Below are positions 539 through 50,258 of a stretch of DNA of 64,000 nucleotides, piece after piece. The first letter of the stretch is position 1. Each line of letters starts with the position of its first letter. A program made the position numbers and the translations under genes. Source of the stretch: Bugula neritina (lineage: Eukaryota > Animalia > Bryozoa); assembly GCA_964035545.1 (NCBI GenBank), contig OZ037766.1:29886640-29950639 (forward strand), read 5' to 3'. The notes under the pieces were generated by a model. The model ran no database searches, was not told the origin of the DNA, and saw only the letters and a program-made list of their open reading frames with translations.

Positions 539-3500
539 CTGAACAGCTCCTACGAGGCACCATCCTGTCGTAGGGTCTTTGGAGAGGGGTGAGACCAGCT
601 AGGGACAGTTGGTAAGATTTAGCTTCATCTACGTAATCTCTACACTCCATGTCTGCATGTATTAAATCATCTACTTCTACCTCCTAAAACGAGAGTGAGA
701 TGGTTTCGTTTCACATCAAGACAAATCGGGAGAGAGAAAGCAGAGTAGTTTCACTTTAACTTAGATGTATGGAGGCAGGAAGTAGAGCAAGTTTTACTTT
801 AACTTACTTGAGTGAGATAGGAGGCAGGAAGTAGAGGTAGTTTCACTTTGGCAAGAAGTGGTGCTAGAGTCTGTTTACGTTTTTCGATATCATCATGTTT
901 CACCCACCTCATGACAGCTTGGTAAACCTAAATCAAGAGGTATAATACAAGAAATGATCCATATGTATAAACAGTTATAGAAAATTAAAATTTCCAGTCT
1001 TTCTAAGTTGGACAAAAAATGGCAAAATAATCTTTTCAACATCAACAAATCAGCTATCAAACTATTAAGAAAATGAATTTAGTAAAGTCAAGATCAGTAG
1101 GCAGTATTACAGTTTCTGAAAGCTTTATCAGGAAGAGAAAATATAATTCATTAACATATTGTTTTCAACCCGCATTACTTTATGTATCATCAAATGGCAT
1201 TTTAATGTTCTCTCTTTATTTATTGCATTTATAAAATAATAGGTTTACTGTATTCATTTGTTGTAAACACAGCTACAAGAAAGTGGATGCCAAGACAATA
1301 GCATGAAAAGTTGTCTCCTGAAATAGAGTACCCACAATGTAAACAGTTACTCTAAGCCCGAGTTTTCCCCTTTCCTTACTTGTATTTCAGAGTCCACGTT
1401 GAGATCGTCGTTTCCGATGATATCGGCTAAATGCTGGGCCGAGATAGTGAAGAATTCGTCACAGTCGACTACTTCGTTGAAGTGATCTGAGATGTAGGAA
1501 TCGGCCAACTCCTGTAGGTCTGTGCGGCTAAAGAATGTAGCACATGGAAGGATATAGAATCATCAAAGAGTATAACAAAAATACTATCAATAAAACTAAT
1601 GGAAAATATATCGCAGTACCGTCTGAAAATTAACAGGATTGGAATTTACTAAATCATAATTGTTGCACGACTACAATAGGAAGTATGGTTAAATATGAGT
1701 CATTTTTGTAGTGTTATATTTATTACTCAGGAAAACGAAAATATGAGATGGGGAAAAGGTGGTTGAGATGATTGCTAAAATTAAAAACGTCAAGACAACA
1801 CAACTTTTTTAGATTTTATATGTATTTTGAGAGGTGAACATTAGTCTATTTTAGGAACATGACAGTGAAAAGTGACAAAAATAGACAAGTGAGCTAAGCA
1901 AGAGAACATAAACCCAAGGCAATGTTCCAAATAGGCAGTACATAGGTCTATATAGAGCTTGGAATGGCCAATCAAGCTAGTAGTAAGGTAATATGAGTTT
2001 AAAATAGCAATTGAGGAAACTTGACCTGTTTTCTCAAATAGCCATAGTTTCCTAAGTTAAATGACAAATATACGACCTAAAGCTACCAGAACAAAGCCCC
2101 CAGTTAAAGTTCACCAAGTAGAAAGCAAATGAGTGCTGATGAGGCATACAATCTTTAGCTAGTACAAAGTTAATGGCTATACATGACCTGCACAGTGACA
2201 GTAACATTAATTAGGTTGACACTAATTACACAAAGTAGGGTATTTTGTTCCCCATTAGTCTTACTTTCTTTGCAAACTTTGCTCATTGTTCACAGCAAAA
2301 ACACACATATTGACAAGCAAGTGTGCAGAGCAGTAGTAAAGGACATGAGGACCAAAATGTATGCATACTTTCTACTCTTGTGAAGCGGTACAATTATTCA
2401 CTTAATAAGGTGGTATTAGGCTTTAGAACTCACCCAAAGGGGGTTACGTTACAGGAATTTCCTTTTCTATACATTTACATAAATTACACACTTTTACATG
2501 ACTCATAGCACATCACTTATATAGGTTGATTAATTGGAAGTGTATGTGTGTGAGTGTGTGTGTGTGAGTGTGTGTGAGTGTGTGTGCGTGAGTGTGTTTA
2601 TATAACCAACTCACCCATGCTGCTCTGCAAACTTTCTCATCTCAATGCAGTTGCTGGGGTGAAGCTGCTGCTTCATGAAGTCACTGCAGCTCTGCACAAC
2701 CAAATCAAACTGCAGAAAAGAGGCTGCGTCAAGCACCTGCTGCACATTGTCAATGTTAAGCGTGATTCGCCCAGTATAAGCAAACTGTAGGAGCAGGTCC
2801 ACTGCCTTGTGGTCTAAATCGTGAAGTTCGACAGAAGGTGCTCGCGTCTCTTTCATCTGACTGGCAAACATTCCTCTGAAATATCCACTAGTGCAGCTCA
2901 GCACCACTTTGTGACAGGCAAACGACCTTGTGCCCAGCTTGAGTTCAAGGTCACACATGTGACCTTTAAGTCTGAAGTCATTGAGGGTAGCGAAACTGTC
3001 TCTAAACATCTGATTGCTGACATCCACAGACCTGGTGGTGTCGAAGTCAAGCTGGTCCGTAGAGTTTCTAGCTGATTTGTTAGAGGACAGGTTTACTAGA
3101 GACCTGAAAGGTCTGTGGGCGGACCTTGGGCCGGCATATCTCTTAAAGTGGGGGCGGCTGTCAGGAGGGGAGGAGTCTATTGACGTCTCCAGGACATTTC
3201 CTGTACTTCCACCTCCATTGTATCTCGAACTCCCTTTCATAACTGAAACAAAGTTTTCATTCAAATGTAGACATGAACATCATTAGCTAAGCTCTAAGCA
3301 CAGCATAACATGTTTATCCTAATACAGTTTTCTCATTATACAAGAAATGAAATTCCAAGAACTTCTATTTTAAACATTTGGATGTTGATACTAGAAGAAA
3401 CAAAACTTGAGCTTTCAATATTGTGTTAAGACATTGTAGTGGTTTGTAGAAATTGTTGTGCTACAAAGTTAATTGACAAGAAGGATGATAAGATTAGGGT

Positions 3501-9200: not shown

Positions 9201-12200
9201 ATGGATAAATACAAAGAAGTTGCTCTCCTTGGAGGGGGAATGTTTGGCAAAGCATACCTATATGAGTATGAAACAAATGGGAAAAAAAGTCAATGTGCTA
9301 TCAAGGTTTCTAATTACTGTTTAAAGTCATATATATCTGTTGTGCTCACTTTCCTTCAAGATTGACAAGACATGCCTAAATTATAGCTATAGTGTGTGTT
9401 TATTAAAAAGATAAATCACATGAGATATTATGAAGATAGAAAATCAAACTAAAAATTCCTTGAGTAATGGTTTAGATATTTCTGTTTCTTTGTGCTGTAA
9501 AAGATAATTTGCAGTGCAATAAGTTTTAAAAGAATGCCCATGCTTTGAGCACAGATGCTGCAAAATCACAATTCTCAATTTTTTTCCAATAAATTAAAAG
9601 TTCTGTGCATCTTTATACAAAAGAAAATTTATGAGTTAAATAAATGCAGCTAAATTTTCCTTCTCCACTTCTTTAGCTGCACTAACTCATACCATGACAT
9701 TGATAGCTAACAAGTCAACAAGCTATTACCAAAAGGCTTTCACCAAACATATTTCAGCAAAAAGCTCCTGTTACCGTATAGGTTTTCATCTTTTTACCGA
9801 TACAAACACTGTAGTTGACATAAAGCCTTTAATTTTTGTTGATTTATTCAAGATTTTTAAGACATTTAAATTATATTCAATTTTTTTTTATAAAAACTTG
9901 ATTTGATATAACAATTAAGTGCATTGGTAAAGCAAGTTAGTATGTTTAAAAGCTGAACAGAGTTTTTATAAATTATATAATAATATTGTACTAAAACAGC
10001 ATGTGACTGACTTTAATACACTATGGAATTCTTTTTACCTTCCTTAGAAATCAATGTGCACATCTGCTGTAATTTAACATGTTAACTTATTAATGAAATG
10101 CTGGTATGAAGTTGTTTCGTTTATTACTGTTTAGTCTATGGTTTTAGAAAATCCCAGTTCCAAGTGTCAAACCAGAGTTACAAGCTAGTGCTGTCAGAGA
10201 AATCGACGTGTTGAGGAAGTTGCATCACCCTGGCATTGTAAAGTATATTGAATCCTTTAAACGTAAGTAATCTTGTTTGACTCAAATGTCATTGCACTAA
10301 AATAATAGATATTCTTTGCAGTTGTGACTAAATTACTCATTTTTTTAATTATGCAGGAAATCTCTGATTTTCTGTAGTTATTAAAGTAAACGATTTAATG
10401 AATACTGCGTACAACATTTGACAGATGCTGGAGATATCTGTATCGTCATGGAGTACTGTGATTCTGGTGACTTGGAGAAGAAAATACATGCTCAGCAAAG
10501 CGTTCAGTTTTCGGAAGAGCAGGTCTTTATTTCACTTGTCATTGAGTACATCATTTAGAGCTGAAAAATTTTGCTACATGTTTATGCTATGTTTGCTTTA
10601 TTTGATTCAGAGACTGGTTAAAGAGTTGATGATAGTTTATTGTTTTAGATATTAAAGGTCCAATCTGGATAGATCTAAAAACACAAACTGATTATTATTA
10701 ATAACACCAATAACATGGTATAAACATTAACAAAAAAAAGCTTATTTAGCATATATTATATTTTGTTTTATGCTTGCTTTTCAATGTCTTTAATTTTAGC
10801 CCAGCTTATTGTGATGTATATATTTCTAGGTATGGGACTGGTTTATTCAGCTGTGCTTGGCTATAAAGTACTTGCACGGAAAACGAGTTATGCACCGAGA
10901 CCTGAAGCCAAACAACATCTTCCTTACTAAGGACAACACTCTTAAAGTTGGAGACTTTGGTCTTTCTAAAGTTTCAGAGTGGTGAGATTTCATTACAACA
11001 TAACTTTTATTAAACATTCAGTAATTTGCTTTTTACTGTACAATACATATATAATATAATATTTTAATAGAAATGTATTAGCTATTTTATAGTCAACAAT
11101 ACATAAATGCATTGCATAGTTACGGTCCATGAACAGTACATGAGTGTTTTGCATAGTTACGGTGCGATGGAGCAAACCCTTGCCGGAGCCATTGGATACT
11201 GTGCTCCTGAGGTGATGGCCGGAGAGCCGTACTCTAGCAAGTGTGACATGTTCTCTCTTGGCTGTGTGCTCTACAACATCCTGATGCTGAGACAACCAGT
11301 GAGTCTATGGTTTACTGACCATGTAACGTGGTTACTTTTTTGCTTTCTCAATTATAGAATTTTATGACTTATCTGTATACTGGTGCTGAGCTAATATTAG
11401 AAATAGGCTACCACACTGCATGTTTTATCTTATTTTAAAATTTTCATTAAATATATATCAGATGTCTGTATAAAATTTAAGATCATGGTTTTTTAGGTAT
11501 TATAATAACTTTGCTGTAAACTTATGATACATGTATATGTTCTAGTTTTAGGCTATTTATATTAAAAGATTACATTTTTATTGCAATTTTAACATAACAT
11601 TTATAACAAGTTTTTAAATTTTAAATGCTTTCTAAATTTTACAAATTATTGTTTGCTGTTTTTTGAGTTTGCTCTACAATTTGATCAAATAAACAGTTGT
11701 AATGGAATAGCTACATTTTATAGAATCAAAGCATTTTGATTTTATCAAATCTAAGGTGGCATTGTGATTGTGTATTTGTTGTAGTTTGAGGGGCCCAATG
11801 TCTTCGCTATAATGAATCTAGTAAAGGAAGGGAGGTATACCCAGGTCTCTCCAAATTATGGCCAGCCTTTAAGAAGCATGGTAACTAGGCTACTAAATGT
11901 AGATCAAAGGTTAGCAATCGTTCTGAGATTAAATGTTGTTTTCTGATGAATTTTCCACAAAGAAAAAATAATGATATGAGAATTTAATGAGAAACAATAA
12001 ATAAAAGTGATTTCTATTTTTGTAAGTTTTTTTATAAAGTTTGTTATGTTGTGAATTTATATTTATATATACATTTGTAAAGCAGTTTTCTACAGGAAAA
12101 GTCATTATATTTTCAGTTCTAAGCTGCAATAACTTAGATAATGTAAAACACACTTTCTTTGCAGTCAAGTAGTTCTAAGACTAACTTATTGTATAACGGT

Positions 12201-15200
12201 TTCAACAAAGATAAGTATAGGCAACTCCGAAATGCCCAAATATGTACGTAGACTCACTAAAATGTGGCGCTTATTTTGCAGAGAGAGACCATCTATAACT
12301 CAAGTAATGAATGACGATACTGTAAGAGCCAAAGCTAAACCTGAAGAACGCCTGCGTAGAGTTTACCAGCATCAGTTAAACAGTAAGTCCCGCCTCTTTA
12401 GTGCAATTAGCCCCGCCTCTTTAGTCCTGTTAGTCCCGCCTCTCTAATACAATACTGTCTGCCCCTTTGAAACAAAAGGCCATGTTTATGTTACTCAGAT
12501 TCTTAACTATAACAAATTGTTTTGTCTCCACAAATATTTTCCCGCGCATTTTTAAAAATCTAAATCTGAAATATTCAAGTCTCTGCTACTAACATTGATA
12601 TTGATATTAAATATTCCAATTGCCTCGATAACAAGTAGGCACTATAAATATTGTAAATATACGTACTAACGGTATGTCACACATTATACACTAACTTGAT
12701 CAATTGTTATGCGATATAAAAATATGAAATTTGTTAGTTAATGCTTCGATAGTAGTTTATCATTATAGATGCCATTGCTATTTCCTAGTACACTTATGAA
12801 TGTAGATGGTGTACTGTTGGACAACCAAGGGAATGGATTCGTCTTTGATCACTATCTTAACAGCCTTCGAGACAACAATTGGAGATTTGACGGTTTGGCT
12901 GAGGTATACAATTTTCTAAAGGAACATTTTTTACATCCATCTGAAAATTTAAATGATTCTGAAAAACGTACAATGAAATACAGTTTTATTCTACAATATA
13001 CTCAATGCGCGCTTCTGTACTGTAAAAGCATAACTTTCTAAATTTTTGCATTTTATTATTTTACTGTTCGGAGGTGATAAACTTAGAGAATGGTGCATGT
13101 TATTTATGTTTAAAGCACTTGAATTAAACACTTTATTGTTCTCTTGTTGACTTTTTCCGTAAAAGTTGGTTTCTGTTTCATATAAAATATTGCCTCTATG
13201 CTGATTTGGATTATTATTCATAATATATGTTGGAAAACCGCATAGAGGCAATATTTTGTACGAGTTTGCTTCGTTTTTTAAATTAAACTAAAAAAATGCT
13301 ACCTTCTACTATTTAGATATTTGAAGCTTTTCTATACGATGAGATGATGAACATGGGTCTTATAAAGCTTCCTGTCCCCGTTGAAGTAAGTACTCTGTCA
13401 CTCATTGTCCGTGGGGACATAGTACTACCTTTGACTAAATACTCACTGTGACTCATTACTCACTGTGACTCATTACTCAGTGTAACTCATTACTCACTGT
13501 GACTCATTACTCACTGTGACTCAGTACTCACTGTGCTGTGACTTGTTCACTGTGACGCCATACTTACTGTGACTCAATAATCACTGTGACTCATAACTCT
13601 GTGTGACTCAATACTCACTGTGACTCAATGCTCACTTGACTCATTACTCACTGGGAGTTTGTAGTGGATATTGACTCTGTTAAAGTTCTATGACTTCAGA
13701 ATTGAGTTGATCTTTTGAACAATTTACACGGTGTTAATCTATAGTCTTTATTTTGTATATCAAATGTTTTATTATTATATATATTACATTACGTCACATC
13801 TAATAATATATAATTGTATATGTGTGGGTGTGCGTGTGCATGCATCCCAATGCTACTCAGCTTTATAGATCCAGTTAGCTTAGTCAGCAAACTGCTAATG
13901 TTAAAAACTACATCATATTCCACATTATATCACAATACATGAGACTGTTAACGACTCTAGTCCACTGGGAACCCTGATTACGACTCACCAGGCTCATTCA
14001 TATTTGCGACGGAAAACTGGCGATATTGTGAGAGACTTTTGATACTGATTCATGGTTCGGGAAATGTCAGAGCTGGCCAATGGACTCAAAGGTGAATGTT
14101 TTAAATTTTAGGTCATTTCGAGCTAGAACGCAAAAGTAAAAGTAATATTGAAAAAAATTCACTTGCATTTTTTAAGTTATATCTTAAGCTTGCATTAAAA
14201 TACCTATATTAATTTTCAAGACTTTTATACTAATTAAATCCCCCTTTGTCTACCTTGATTTAACAAATTTACGAAACAATGTACTTTGGGATTTTAAATA
14301 TGAAATTCCATTTCATAACCCTAGACATTTCATAGCTGAATGTTTTGCATTACCCTGCATGTATAATGTTGTAAATGTGTAATATTAGATTGTACTGTGA
14401 AAATGAAAGTAAATTTTTCATCAGCCACTGTTAGTGTGCTGAAAAAAGTAGTACATAACTGTAATATGCCAGCTTTGCTGTCAGTGTTTATGCTATTGTT
14501 CTTTGTGGTGTTGAACCAATAGACTGATGATAGGCGGATCACTGGACCAGGGAACACAACTTCCATATATACGGAAAGCCAGGGAATGCAACTACGAAGT
14601 GATGGTACTTAATACCAACGATAATCAAAGTGACACAGCGGTAGGATTTTTTTATTTTAATAAACAGAAAAAACTATGCTGCCAATGTAGATTTTTAAAA
14701 TTTTTGTTAAAGCAAAATGTGCTATTATAGTATTATAATTTTAAAATTTGTCATAATCTACAGCTTTCTACTTTAATTACCACTACTACTACTACCACTA
14801 CTACTACTGCCACTGCTACTACTACTACTACTACCACCGCTGCTACCACCTCAATCTTTATGATTATCTCTTTGCATGGTACTAAAGTTGTACTCAACAT
14901 ACCACACTAGCTATGGCATCGTTAGGAATTGCTTTTGTGATAATCTTGGAAATGATAACTTGTATGCAAAATAATTTAGTGGCAGACTGGCTAGAGTGTG
15001 TGCTTGCTTTGTGTGCATAGCTTTAACTAAATATTTACAGCTTTTACAATAATTTATCATCACTAATTTATATTAGTAGAATATTTTATTTTCTGCTAGC
15101 TTAATTAAAACAAAACACTGGCTCACGTTTAACTACAAGATCTTCTGAAAAACCTGATTTAAGTTAATGGACTCTTCTAGGGTTGCCGGTCACCTCGGGA

Positions 15201-15814
15201 CCACGGGGAATACGTTTGGACTCACTACATTACAAAGTGTACAGCCAAGCAAATTGCTATCAAGTCACACAGCGCCGGGGGTTCTGTTGTGGCTCATTTG
15301 CTCTCCAAGTTTGAAGATGATTTTCGGAACAGAGTCAAAGCGAATGCATTCACTGGTGATTGTTGCTTATTCGGGAAGAAAATGCAACCTTTTGTTCACA
15401 GTGTAAGTCTTTTGTGCGGAAATATTTTCATTTTTATAATAAGGTCGATTGTGAACATAAGCAGACAACTTCTTGTATTTGATTATTCCCAGCATTTGGT
15501 TGACCATGGGTTACTTAGTAGCTATATAAGTGCAGCAAAACATTATAGTTAAAAGAATCAATTTATTTTACAGCTTTAAATATTTGATTAATTAACGGTA
15601 TATAAAAATTATTAATGTATTTCATCAACTTGCGTTATTGTTTCAACAGGCAACCAAGAGTTGGATAGTAAGTGACAAGAACTTGGGAACGCCCCTGCCT
15701 TCTAACGGCTGTGAATGCGCGTCTGCTGGCACACCAGAACATCGGGAAACGCCTCACAAAGCATTTGAACCTGTTTTCAAGTTCATTGCCGAGAAATTTG
15801 GTGATAGTGTTTAA
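9201..15814 (+). CDS. NEK/NIMA-like Ser/Thr kinase fused to a C-terminal FAM172A/ARB2A-like (Arb2, alpha/beta-hydrolase fold) domain, ~546 aa
   Basis: 13 GT-AG exons, all phases compatible: 9201-9305, 10148-10262, 10425-10522, 10830-10981, 11157-11298, 11785-11909, 12282-12382, 12806-12903, 13317-13385, 13961-14091, 14523-14640, 15181-15402, 15650-15814 (1641 nt including TAA). Kinase motifs: [95 protein letters not shown]. Arb2 motifs: [53 protein letters not shown]. Confidence 0.85.
12385..12447. repeat. ~23 bp tandem repeat x3 starting at the exon 7 donor
   Basis: agtcccgcctctttagt / agccccgcctctttagt / agtcccgcctctctaat immediately after the GT at 12383. Confidence 0.7.
13437..13652. repeat. 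17 bp minisatellite (ACTCACTGTGACTCATT), ~12 copies
   Basis: Direct reading; begins ~50 bp after the exon 9 donor of the kinase-Arb2 gene. Confidence 0.85.
14778..14850. repeat. (CTA/CCA)n microsatellite
   Basis: Direct reading. Confidence 0.8.
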
Positions 15815-16885: not shown

Positions 16886-23608
<6,723 letters not shown>

Positions 23609-30300: not shown

Positions 30301-33300
30301 TAGAAATAATTTTTAGAACATTCATCTGTTAGCTTGTTGTCTATAAAAGTAACTTCTCATATTCCAAAAGGAATTACACACTAATGCTGTCAAGTAAAAT
30401 ATTGTGACAGATAAATGTAGAAATTATTCTCGTGTTATTTCAAACAGGAAATACATGCCGATGCTGTAAAATAAAAAGTTGTAAACTAACTCGTGTTTGT
30501 AGGACTACGAGAGAGTCTGATAAAGACGCTATACTGACCAGGGTGATGAAGAATTGTCCTCCCGGCCACAGAACCCGTTCACCCAACACCTCATCACTTT
30601 ACGCACTCAACAGATCAACCAATCAGATATTAGCACATCAGATTGTGTTGGATACTAAAAAAGTCAAACTGCCCACTGTAAGTTAGACTAATCACTAAGG
30701 TAGACTAATCACTGTAAGTCAGACTACCCACTGAAAGTTGAACTACTGTATACTACACTTTCTACTGTCAGGTTCTTTTCTGTCAGTTAGACGTTCTATT
30801 GTGAATTAGACTCTCTACTGTTAGGTAGACTCTGTACTGTCAGTTAGACTCTCTAAGGCTCCTACTGCTTTGAATATGTTGTATAAGTATATTATATTGA
30901 AGGAGTTGATACGTGAAGCCAAAGAGTTAGAGTTGAGATATGATCTACTAGACTGCCACATAACACTCTGTGCTGCTATGGTTCCCAGTCTATTCACTGA
31001 GAACTTCGACTACCAAACTGTTGATGATTTGGTACACGGAGTTCTCGGCAACCAGGAGGTATGTTAGCGGTGGTCTCTTTCACCTAAATTTGTAAAATAT
31101 CATGAACAAACCTTACGTTTTTGTTTAAAAATAAAACTAACTTCAAAAAAGTCTTTCAACGAATTTGTTGCCATCAGTTGCCAGATAATGGTGAGATATA
31201 GGTTCAAACTCAACTGGATTTTTTTAAAAAACCTATTTCCAATGAAACTATCAACTTTGCACACATTTTTCTTCTTTTCTGTATTTTTTTTTGCATATTT
31301 TTATAGGTTTAGCATGTTTTTGAAATACCCATCATGTAATTCAGATTTTAGGCAACACAATGCATGTGCACGTGGTGGAAGATGGGTATGCGGCTAGAGT
31401 TACAGATTTCTTCACATATAAAGCCGTGTCAACCGATGTCCTCGAGAAGTGGGCGTATCCCTTCTCTCCTGATACAGAGTGGTCTAATGAGAACGGCATT
31501 TCACTCGTTAGTTTTGGAAATAAATATGCTGTCAGCTCTAAATTATTTAGCAAGTAAGTTATTTTCATTGTGTACCACATCATCAAAAATTGTGTATTGC
31601 AAAGTCGGTTGTAGTGTATGATACTTTAAGGTGCTGAGTATTGTCTACTTAACCATGTTGCATGACATAATCAGATACTGGGTAGCGAGTTGCGGTCTAT
31701 GTTGTATATGATGTCATCAGATTATGTGTACTTTCTGTTTATACGATTATATTCTCTGTATTAATTGAATAATTTGATGATTTGTTTTTATTTTGTTTCA
31801 CTAAATTAAGCAATCGTTTCTATAGCTCACCAATTACTGTAGTTTTTAGAAACTTATTTCCATCATCGGGTGTTATTCTGCATGACATTGTGTTTGTGTC
31901 TTTTTTAAACTTTAGTCAGTTACTACGAGATTCTTGTTATTGAAATTGTTATGGCAATCCTGAATAATAAAACATACAATGAGAAACACATATCCTTGTC
32001 TGCTTTTATGGAGCATTTTGGAAATTTTATTAACATTGTCCCTTTGAGGAAGTTGCATCCCTTTCTCATGACTTTTTCTGATTACAGGAAATGTAGCCTG
32101 GGCAGCAATGTGGTGATTGGTGATAACACAGCTATCAAATACGGTGCTTCAATATCCAACAGTGTTATTGGCAATAACTGCATAATAGGTGAGTCATTCC
32201 ATCATACAGGGGTGGAGAAATAACTTTTCTTTATTAGGGGTCAAGCCCTTGCAGCACCTGCTTGGCTAGTACTGTTGAGCGAACATTTATATACTGTGCT
32301 ATCGGACCAACGATTAAAAGGAAAAATTTATCATGAGGTCATTTCACACTGTAAGGAGCAACCTTAGACTCGTACACAGTCATTCAACAAAAACTGTAAA
32401 AAGTGTTACTTTTTATTCTTATATAAGGCTTTTCTGTTTTAGCGTGAACTTCTGCTTGAGAAATAATAGACTATTTCTTATATGCGAGAAGCTGCATTTC
32501 CTATCCTTTACAGGTGCGAATGTTTCCATACGAAACTGCTATGTTTGGGACAACACAGTGATTGAGGATGACTGTAGCCTGACTAACACTATAATATGTG
32601 AGCAAGTACGGCTGTATAAGAACACCAAACTACTTGCCACAGCTAAAGACACTATGGCTATGCAGAATATTGACTATGTCCTTGGTAAAGGAGTGAGTAC
32701 TGCATAGATGTATCATGCTGTGTGGGGGTACATGGAATTGTGCTTAAAGTTTAATTGCTGTGAGGAGAGATGATGAAATTGAGCAACTCTAAAGTCCTAG
32801 TTATAGGTCTAAATGTTTAATGTGTTGCTGAGAGGAATGGCATGTGTTACAGGTACATCTGGGCCCAAATGTCACCTTAGACCAGCCTGTGCTGCTCACT
32901 GCTGCCGCCATGAAAGATGACTGGGGTGAACCTTTTTCTGGTAATTGCTAATATTTACTTTATGGGGGACGGTTTCATTCATAAGCAATGTTATGGGTTG
33001 TGGGTTGTACACTGAGCAGCTCTAATCTTGGAGTTTGCCCAAAACACTGTTTAGTTTTGTGAGAAATGGAATTATTGTATTTATATTGTTCAGAGATAAT
33101 GCAGCTGGTGTGATCTAAATTATAGCTTGGTGCAAACATTGTAATATATACTGAGTTCGTGACCTTCTCATACATGTATTGTTACTGTAATCCTCAATTT
33201 TGTAAAGATAAAGCAACTCCAACCGAGTACAATTAATATGAAGCCTGATATGTTAGTGAGCAGATAAATGATGAAGTTAGAGAATTGTTTACAACTTTTT

Positions 33301-37667: not shown

Positions 37668-47306
<9,639 letters not shown>

Positions 47307-48624: not shown

Positions 48625-50258
48625 TTAAAAGTAATGCTTTTCGCACATAAACAGTGCTGCCTTGGTGCACATGTCATCATTCCACTGGAAGTTCGTGCTG
48701 TCTCCACACATGCCCAGACAGTTCTGGTTGCCGCCATAGTTGTCTGGTTGGTGAAGGGACCAGTCCTCAACAACAATGTCCTTCAGAAGAAGGCCATCCC
48801 ATGCCCAAACTCCATGAATATTCCTTCCGCCAATCCAAAGGAAGTTATTTTTGCACGGAGTCCAATCTGTATTTAAGCATTTTATTTGATTTAAGTTATA
48901 CAATGAGTAAAACATTTTAGGTGACTGCTAAAAGCATAGGGAATTTCAGCTAAATGGAGCCAAATGTTGAATAATTGCACAAAAGTAAGTTTTCATGGGT
49001 TGTAAATAAACAAGCTAAGTAAAGGTTCACATTCCCTCCAAGTCTATGTTATGCAGGCTTTCTGCTATAAATAGCACAAAGGTGTTTAATTAGACTGAGA
49101 CCTTATAAGCAGCAGTTGAAGCAATCATGTCCATGGCCAAGTTTACTTGATGAGAGTTTCGATTCATTACCTGGGTGGGTTTTTCTCATGTGCTTAACCC
49201 AAGATATAGACTCTAGAGTGTCAAACACTGCAAGCCTGTCTCCTTTACTCTCGCAGAATGATTTGGCGGTGTACCAAGTTTCAGAGAAAGGAACTATAGT
49301 TATACAGGTTCTAGAGTGAGGATTGAAGAGGTAGCTGCGGGGACAGGTAGTCAAACCTACAAAATGTAAAGATCTTAAGCTATGATAAATGTAGTACTTA
49401 TTGGGTATTACACAAAATGTGTTGTGCAATATGTGTACATAATTATGCATTGATTTGCAATATCTATATATAGCTATGAAATATCTTTGGTATATTATTT
49501 TTTATAAAATTCACATACAAATATTTTTAAAATACTTAGCAAATAAACTAAAATTTCTACACACCAGCTACGCATATACGCTAGTCAAAACTACATAATA
49601 CTAAGATAATAATATGAATACTCATTACATGCCGTATTGAAATAATAATTGTGCTTTTTAGTAATTACCGTTTCAAGAAATAAAATTGTTAAGCCTTTCT
49701 TGGCTGATAAAACTTTTTTTTAATTTTTTTGACACATAAAATCATAATCGGCTAATTGTAATTTTTTTTGTGTCATAATGTTTATAGAATTATAGCACAA
49801 TTAAGTAATTAGTGTCAACCACATGCAATGATATTATATGATCTCGAAAAGACACTATAAATCTAACAATACATTTAACATTTTTGTAAATATTTAAACA
49901 AATTAGCTTTTGTTTAAAACAAAACTATAATTTAATCAGAATATTTAACTGCTCAAATGATCTATGACATCTGATAAACAAATTTACCTGTGTCCAGCTC
50001 TCTACGATCTCTTTGAGATTCTGGGTCTTGATTTTCGTCTGTTTCATTGGCTAGTTGGGTTGCTGGAGCCATTGAAAAGTTTTGGGTCAGTTCAGACATC
50101 AGCAGTGGCTCAAACGTTTGCACGGGTTGAACTGGCTGAGAAGGCTCAGCTGGTTTGATTGTCTGGTTGGTGGGATCCGTGAAGTTAGCTCCACCTACAC
50201 CAATGTAGGCAGCTAGAACTACCAAAACGAGGCTTCTTATATTACTTCCTTTCATCAT
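48625..50258 (-). CDS. Secreted C-type lectin A (extended pro-region, QPD/WND)
   Basis: Exons 50258-49988, 49356-49171, 48866-48625. Signal peptide; CPRSYLFNPHSRTC, WYTAKSFC, LAVF, WIGG, QPDN, CLGM, WNDDMC, FMCEK. Confidence 0.88.

Follow-up and report, generated by a model that had tools for sequence, protein, structure and literature searches.

The question raised by this locus is whether a NEK-like kinase and a FAM172A/Arb2 domain are encoded by one gene in the bryozoan Bugula neritina and, if so, how that gene arose and what its product might do. FAM172A/ARB2A has been linked to disease, but its biochemistry is poorly understood. In the window (the whole 64,000-nt stretch of DNA analyzed here), the initial annotation had described one 13-exon open frame passing from kinase into Arb2, and its coordinates, splice sites, phases, and 546-aa length were all reproduced. 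The coding sequence runs from the ATG at 9201 to the TAA at 15814 (13 exons; 1641 nt, that is, 546 aa plus TAA), with GT-AG at 12/12 introns, phases that close, and no internal stops. Its exons are as follows, P0203, P0151, and P0013 being Watersipora subatra proteins described below.

9201..9305, + strand, exon 1: ATG, Gly-rich loop (GGGMFG), and beta-3 Lys; 49% identity with the start of P0203
10148..10262, + strand, exon 2: alpha-C Glu; 115 nt, the Watersipora length; Pkinase match
10425..10522, + strand, exon 3: kinase hinge
10830..10981, + strand, exon 4: HRDLKPNN and DFG; Pkinase E 4.5e-16; 152 nt in every co-orthologue
11157..11298, + strand, exon 5: activation loop (Thr kept), P+1 loop GAIGY for GTPYY, APE; Pkinase match
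11785..11909, + strand, exon 6: kinase C-lobe
12282..12382, + strand, exon 7, the fusion exon: 101 nt, phase 2 in and phase 1 out, as in all five Watersipora genes
12806..12903, + strand, exon 8: N-terminal part of Arb2, equivalent to unfused FAM172A exon 3; 62% to P0203; 98 nt, as in P0013 exon 3
13317..13385, + strand, exon 9: Arb2; 69 nt in every co-orthologue
13961..14091, + strand, exon 10: Arb2, IHGSG...GQW block; Pfam match; 131 nt, as in P0203 and P0151
14523..14640, + strand, exon 11: Arb2, Pfam match; the vertebrate FAM172A CK2-NLS loop is missing after this exon
15181..15402, + strand, exon 12: nucleophile elbow HSAGG; TG(D) in place of TD at the acid position; Arb2 Pfam match above cut-off
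15650..15814, + strand, exon 13: conserved His (HRETP) and TAA

Since an acceptor sits just upstream of exon 1, a 5'-UTR intron is implied; an upstream coding exon was considered and rejected because P0203 and P0151 begin at the matching Met. Profile and database searches of the fusion gene were run with single exons, and folding and Atlas searches used P0203 as a stand-in. The expected pair of Pfam domains was recovered exon by exon, with Pkinase on exons 2, 4, and 5 (best E 4.5e-16) and Arb2 (PF22749) on exons 10, 11, and 12 (best E 2.1e-8). In a DNA run, one gapless contig covers 12101-13469 (exons 7-9), with 11 differences from the window plus indels, all intronic among those listed. This contig argues against a local misassembly of exons 7-9, and the Watersipora genes do so more strongly; because the run may come from the assembly's own source sample, the contig does not count as independent support. 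The same run shows small deletions in another allele at 11110-11160, where the exon 5 acceptor is also short-duplicated 37 nt upstream (11120), the use of which would shift the frame. Neighboring features lie at 2611-3264 (-), 20419-20757 (-), 32333-32707 (+), 45252-45611 (-), and 49103-49450 (-); Pfam identified a BTB (kelch-like) gene, UDP-glucose dehydrogenase, and eIF2B-epsilon, and SRCR-like and C-type-lectin-like exons were recognized by eye, none with an evident link to the fusion.

The strongest evidence comes from a second bryozoan family. When related genomes were checked for the same pairing, five Watersipora subatra RefSeq proteins of 488-613 aa proved to be Pkinase plus Arb2 (P0203, P0151, P0150, P0004, and P0007; accessions XP_067941953.1, XP_067943980.1, XP_067943983.1, and XP_067944113.1, plus P0203, 547 aa), in line with the proposal of a lineage-specific chimera. 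They were first met in a search of the 50% library with exon 12 and then in two Arb2-region searches; in these word-based, non-exhaustive searches, a kinase was also present in only 5/206 Arb2-matching proteins, all from Watersipora. Mapped on the Watersipora genome, P0203, P0151, and P0004 agree with the window gene in having 13 coding exons and in all 12 intron phases; in P0150 there is an additional exon at the 5' end, and the P0007 model is missing the first two exons and has no N-lobe. All six genes have a fusion exon of 101 nt, exons 2, 4, and 9 are also equal in length where present, and P0203 aligns with the window gene without gaps over exon 7. In local trees, for which the exon peptides of the fusion gene were strung together with X between exons, the Arb2 halves of the six fusions form one clade (support 100/100), as do the kinase halves (100/98, mixture model, PLK/Aurora left out). 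With PLK/Aurora as root, an earlier kinase tree had broken up the fused clade, long-branch pull being the probable cause, and was redone without those outgroups. Because architecture, introns, and fusion exon are shared and each half forms a clade, the fusion is one event that predates the Bugula/Watersipora split and later expanded to five copies in Watersipora. Additionally, ENA metagenome contigs (L046-L051) from at least two unidentified species carry exons with the fused-type Arb2 signature (IKxHS, AFTG, ETP); these contigs were too short to reach a kinase.

The main objection would be that two adjacent genes or isoforms are involved, the kinase ending in intron 7 and Arb2 having its own start, so that the fusion is an annotation artifact. 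In-frame stops are indeed present in intron 7, through a read-through TAA at 12445-12447 or through the acceptor at 12769, which leads to a stop after six codons, and the Watersipora records are predicted (XP_) models. However, these routes, which the initial annotation had singled out as the way its model could fail, exist as sequence and are not conserved: read-through past the Watersipora fusion exon adds 2-12 aa that are not conserved, and there is no conserved internal start either. Furthermore, kinase and Arb2 sequence share one exon of equal length and phases across the six genes. The two-gene explanation is thus very improbable, and we are highly confident that the NEK-Arb2 fusion is real; from this conservation, we infer a single 546-aa two-domain product. 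The proposed dN/dS comparison with Watersipora was informative in part, since dS is saturated and only dN could be compared; the junction exons 7-9 (0.50) evolve at a dN like that of the kinase (0.51) and the Arb2 core (0.43).

Where the two halves came from can be read from their introns. On the Arb2 side, introns 7-12 of the window gene are those of FAM172A, and the 3' half of exon 7 corresponds to the end of FAM172A exon 2. On the kinase side, the window exons match the genome's own NEK1-like gene at C2:26.54 Mb, which shares 5/6 kinase introns (1, 2, 4, 5, and 6) as judged from exon borders. Intron matches on both sides therefore place the junction inside exon 7, as had been claimed, near 12340; the exon holds the last kinase helix and then, from about that position, the first Arb2 helix. 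P0203 also had NEK1 as its best PDB match (E 6e-60), followed by NEK7, and its other database matches were mostly NEKs; the kinase tree leaves an open fork where the fused clade would join NEK1/3/5. The separate FAM172A whose existence was to be checked is present at C4:9.225-9.236 Mb, has a first exon of its own, and groups with Watersipora P0013; no kinase was found within 48 kb upstream of it. A transmembrane anchor in its exon 1 was considered and is not claimed, being weak (hydropathy 0.99, against 2.7 in P0013). Intron positions and trees together show the predicted gene to be a cheilostome bryozoan chimera, in which a tail-less NEK1-like kinase copy was joined in frame to a FAM172A copy from exon 2 onward.

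Two further predicted kinase-Arb2 genes lie on the same chromosome, at least one of which appears to come from a separate fusion. A tandem cluster at C2:25281230-25326509 holds three related NEK kinases, A, B, and C. In predicted models, the reading frames of A and B run on across a phase-1 intron into Arb2 exons; the sequence past C yielded no Arb2 as far as 25.36 Mb. The Arb2 halves of A and B group with unfused FAM172A genes (97/82), and an AU test rejected a clade of A, B, and the window gene (p 0.004) but did not reject A alone with the window gene (p 0.17). The Arb2 of B is a copy of the C4 FAM172A from intron 1 onward, at 72-82% identity with introns included (dN/dS of B Arb2 against C4 FAM172A, 0.40; of B kinase against C, 0.12). 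Because of this grouping, the AU test, and the near-copy of the C4 gene, B is best explained as a separate, younger fusion or as a replacement of the Arb2 half. Each of A and B has an LTR retroelement in an intron, with LTR pairs 99.7% identical, and the last exon of A is present as an extra copy in B. Downstream of C (C2:25328074-25330100), open frames of acidic composition may represent either tail exons of C itself or the gene that follows. Elsewhere in the assembly, small contigs (C33-C314, e.g., C105:80888-81619) gave many kinase matches with in-frame TAA/TAG, and very short introns in C105; they are probably ciliate cobiont DNA.

The Gly loop, the beta-3 Lys, and the alpha-C Glu are all retained in the kinase half of the window protein, as are HRDLKxxN, DFG, the activation-loop Thr, and APE. 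Its P+1 loop, in contrast, departs from the NEK consensus in exon 5 (GTPYY to GAIGY) and is altered in 5/5 Watersipora copies; at three of the four Thr-Pro-Tyr-Tyr positions lost in the fusions, 39-40 of 40 other kinases retain the residue. The HRDLK Lys is Thr (HRDLT) in 4/5 Watersipora copies, and P0203 retains both this Lys and the activation-loop Thr. With the P+1 Thr lost here and the HRDLK Lys lost in four Watersipora copies, kinase activity may be low.

In the Arb2 half, the nucleophile-elbow Ser and the His of an alpha/beta serine hydrolase are present, as is the fold, and both residues are kept in 6/6 fusions. The universal Arb2 Asp, found in 67/67 unfused homologues, is Gly in 6/6 fusions, with an Asp near the lost acid position at +1 in five of the six and at +2 in the sixth. 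Other residues near the site are specific to the clade, namely Val to Lys before HS and Ser to Pro after His. Among solved folds, the Arb2 half of P0203 came nearest to Clr3 (Z 20.4), with Hda1 second (Z 19.2) and esterases following at Z values up to 13.5. AlphaFold2 of P0203 (pLDDT 89.9, pTM 0.87) gave an ordered helical junction and suggested that the two domains may pack tightly, although domain packing is unsure because the Atlas model reached a pTM of 0.54. The CK2-NLS loop region spans 15 residues in the window gene versus 71 in frog ARB2A, and the loop is likewise absent from the invertebrate unfused FAM172A homologues measured.

What the fused protein does is less settled. We tentatively favor, at somewhat short of an even chance, a reading in which the kinase is the output and Arb2 replaces the NEK1 tail as a dimerizing and docking module, as in Hda1/Clr3. 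Dimerizing tails commonly activate NEK kinases. This reading draws on the similar layout of Hda1, on NEK tail dimerization, and on the homodimerization of FAM172A (PMC10205598); the Hda1 ARB2 domain also dimerizes and binds histones (PMC5036196). Also in its favor are the retained kinase motifs (Lys, HRD, Asn, DFG, and APE), the closeness of the Arb2 fold to Clr3 and Hda1, and the Gly that replaces the universal Arb2 Asp in all six fusions. Dimerization through Arb2 would let the kinase autophosphorylate in trans at the activation-loop Thr that it retains, and docking through Arb2 would keep substrates tethered to a kinase whose substrate recognition would be altered, in agreement with the lost GTPYY consensus. 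Chromatin or another FAM172A-type partner would be a likelier docking target than Argonaute via the mammalian loop. Against the docking reading, a live hydrolase site would fit equally well the Ser and His kept in 6/6 fusions and the Asp lying one or two positions past the Gly. Arb2 might instead be the output enzyme, a serine hydrolase with a Ser-His pair and shifted Asp that is switched by the kinase or by nucleotide binding. Mouse FAM172A reportedly has serine hydrolase activity, and the two residues persist despite saturated dS, amid clade-specific changes around the site and in a fold with Z 12-13.5 to esterases. On the other side are the Gly at the otherwise universal Asp and the missing catalytic triad of Hda1/Clr3-type Arb2 (PMC11878206), and we consider a kinase-gated hydrolase rather unlikely.

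The initial annotation had proposed an Argonaute partner, with Arb2 bringing the kinase to Argonaute or small-RNA complexes. The family name invites this idea, repeated kinase-Arb2 fusion hints at a phosphorylation link, and FAM172A binds AGO2 directly via the CK2-NLS loop with E228/E229, regulated by CK2 phosphorylation (PMC10205598). However, that loop, the sole mapped AGO2-binding element of FAM172A, is the one absent here. Since the invertebrate unfused homologues measured also lack it, invertebrate FAM172A would have to bind AGO through a different surface, and we know of none. The Argonaute reading is accordingly improbable. Equally doubtful is a pseudokinase or low-activity scaffold in which both halves act solely by binding: the lost P+1 consensus, HRDLT in four Watersipora copies, the Arb2 Gly, and long branches in the kinase tree speak for it, but the window protein has its catalytic set intact from the Gly loop through APE and P0203 retains both Lys and Thr. 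The dimerizing and docking tail stays our tentative preference, and a fused, selected kinase-Arb2 protein offers a single-chain system for deciding between two roles of Arb2, that of a docking/dimer module and that of a regulated hydrolase.

The claim of novelty holds in part. Literature searches found no description of a NEK-Arb2 fusion or of any animal kinase-Arb2 fusion; nevertheless, a kinase-plus-Arb2 protein was described from oomycetes in 2010, PITG_06776, an AGC kinase with N-terminal Arb2 (Judelson and Ah-Fong, PMC3019232). The fusion is apparently undescribed in animals and bryozoan-only so far, the pairing itself being known from oomycetes. More speculatively, and with a low probability in our estimation, kinase-Arb2 proteins may have had three or more origins (the AGC type of oomycetes, the NEK clade of bryozoans, and the second C2 event) because FAM172A/Arb2 generally works with a kinase, the bryozoan protein then being a one-chain phosphorylation-gated serine hydrolase or a chromatin-docking kinase. 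If true, it would reveal the biochemistry of FAM172A, a CHARGE-syndrome protein. As an example of exon shuffling, the case is both clean and datable: the old fusion is marked by one chimeric exon, and in the younger fusion the donor intron can still be recognized at 72-82% DNA identity. Arb2 is also joined to Syntaxin-18_N in arthropods (P0157/Atlas rows) and to ATG29_N in ascomycetes, two pairings that could be genuine fusions or the result of merged gene models.

Among known systems, the Watersipora co-orthologues share the architecture, intron phases, 101-nt fusion exon, and clade-specific Arb2 residues; they differ in being five copies, four with HRDLT for HRDLK, and are known from automatic annotation only ("Nek5-like," "uncharacterized," "FAM172 family"). 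NEK1/3/5 kinases provide the best PDB sequence match, the catalytic motifs, and five intron positions common with the genome's NEK1-like gene, whereas the fusion lacks their coiled-coil tail and has a remodeled P+1 loop. With FAM172A/ARB2A (PF22749), the gene shares the whole Arb2 domain, six introns common with unfused bryozoan FAM172A, and the Ser and His; unlike it, the fusion has a kinase in place of the first exon, no CK2-NLS loop, and TG for TD. The class II deacetylases Hda1 and Clr3 likewise place the enzyme first and Arb2 last and are the closest solved folds (Z 19-20), but their enzyme is another one and their Arb2 (PF09757) lacks the triad and is 14% identical. Finally, the oomycete proteins also combine a eukaryotic protein kinase and Arb2 in one chain; the best ESM Atlas match to P0203 was a 245-member, mostly oomycete Arb2/kinase cluster (score 0.97), and the Arb2 halves superpose (TM 0.82 over P0203 residues 263-541). 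In the oomycetes, Arb2 is N-terminal and the kinase is AGC, according to the paper's description, whereas the bryozoan fusion, an animal gene, starts with the NEK kinase and carries the introns of NEK1 and FAM172A. With its domains in another order and its kinase from another family, the bryozoan gene has converged on this pairing from an independent origin.
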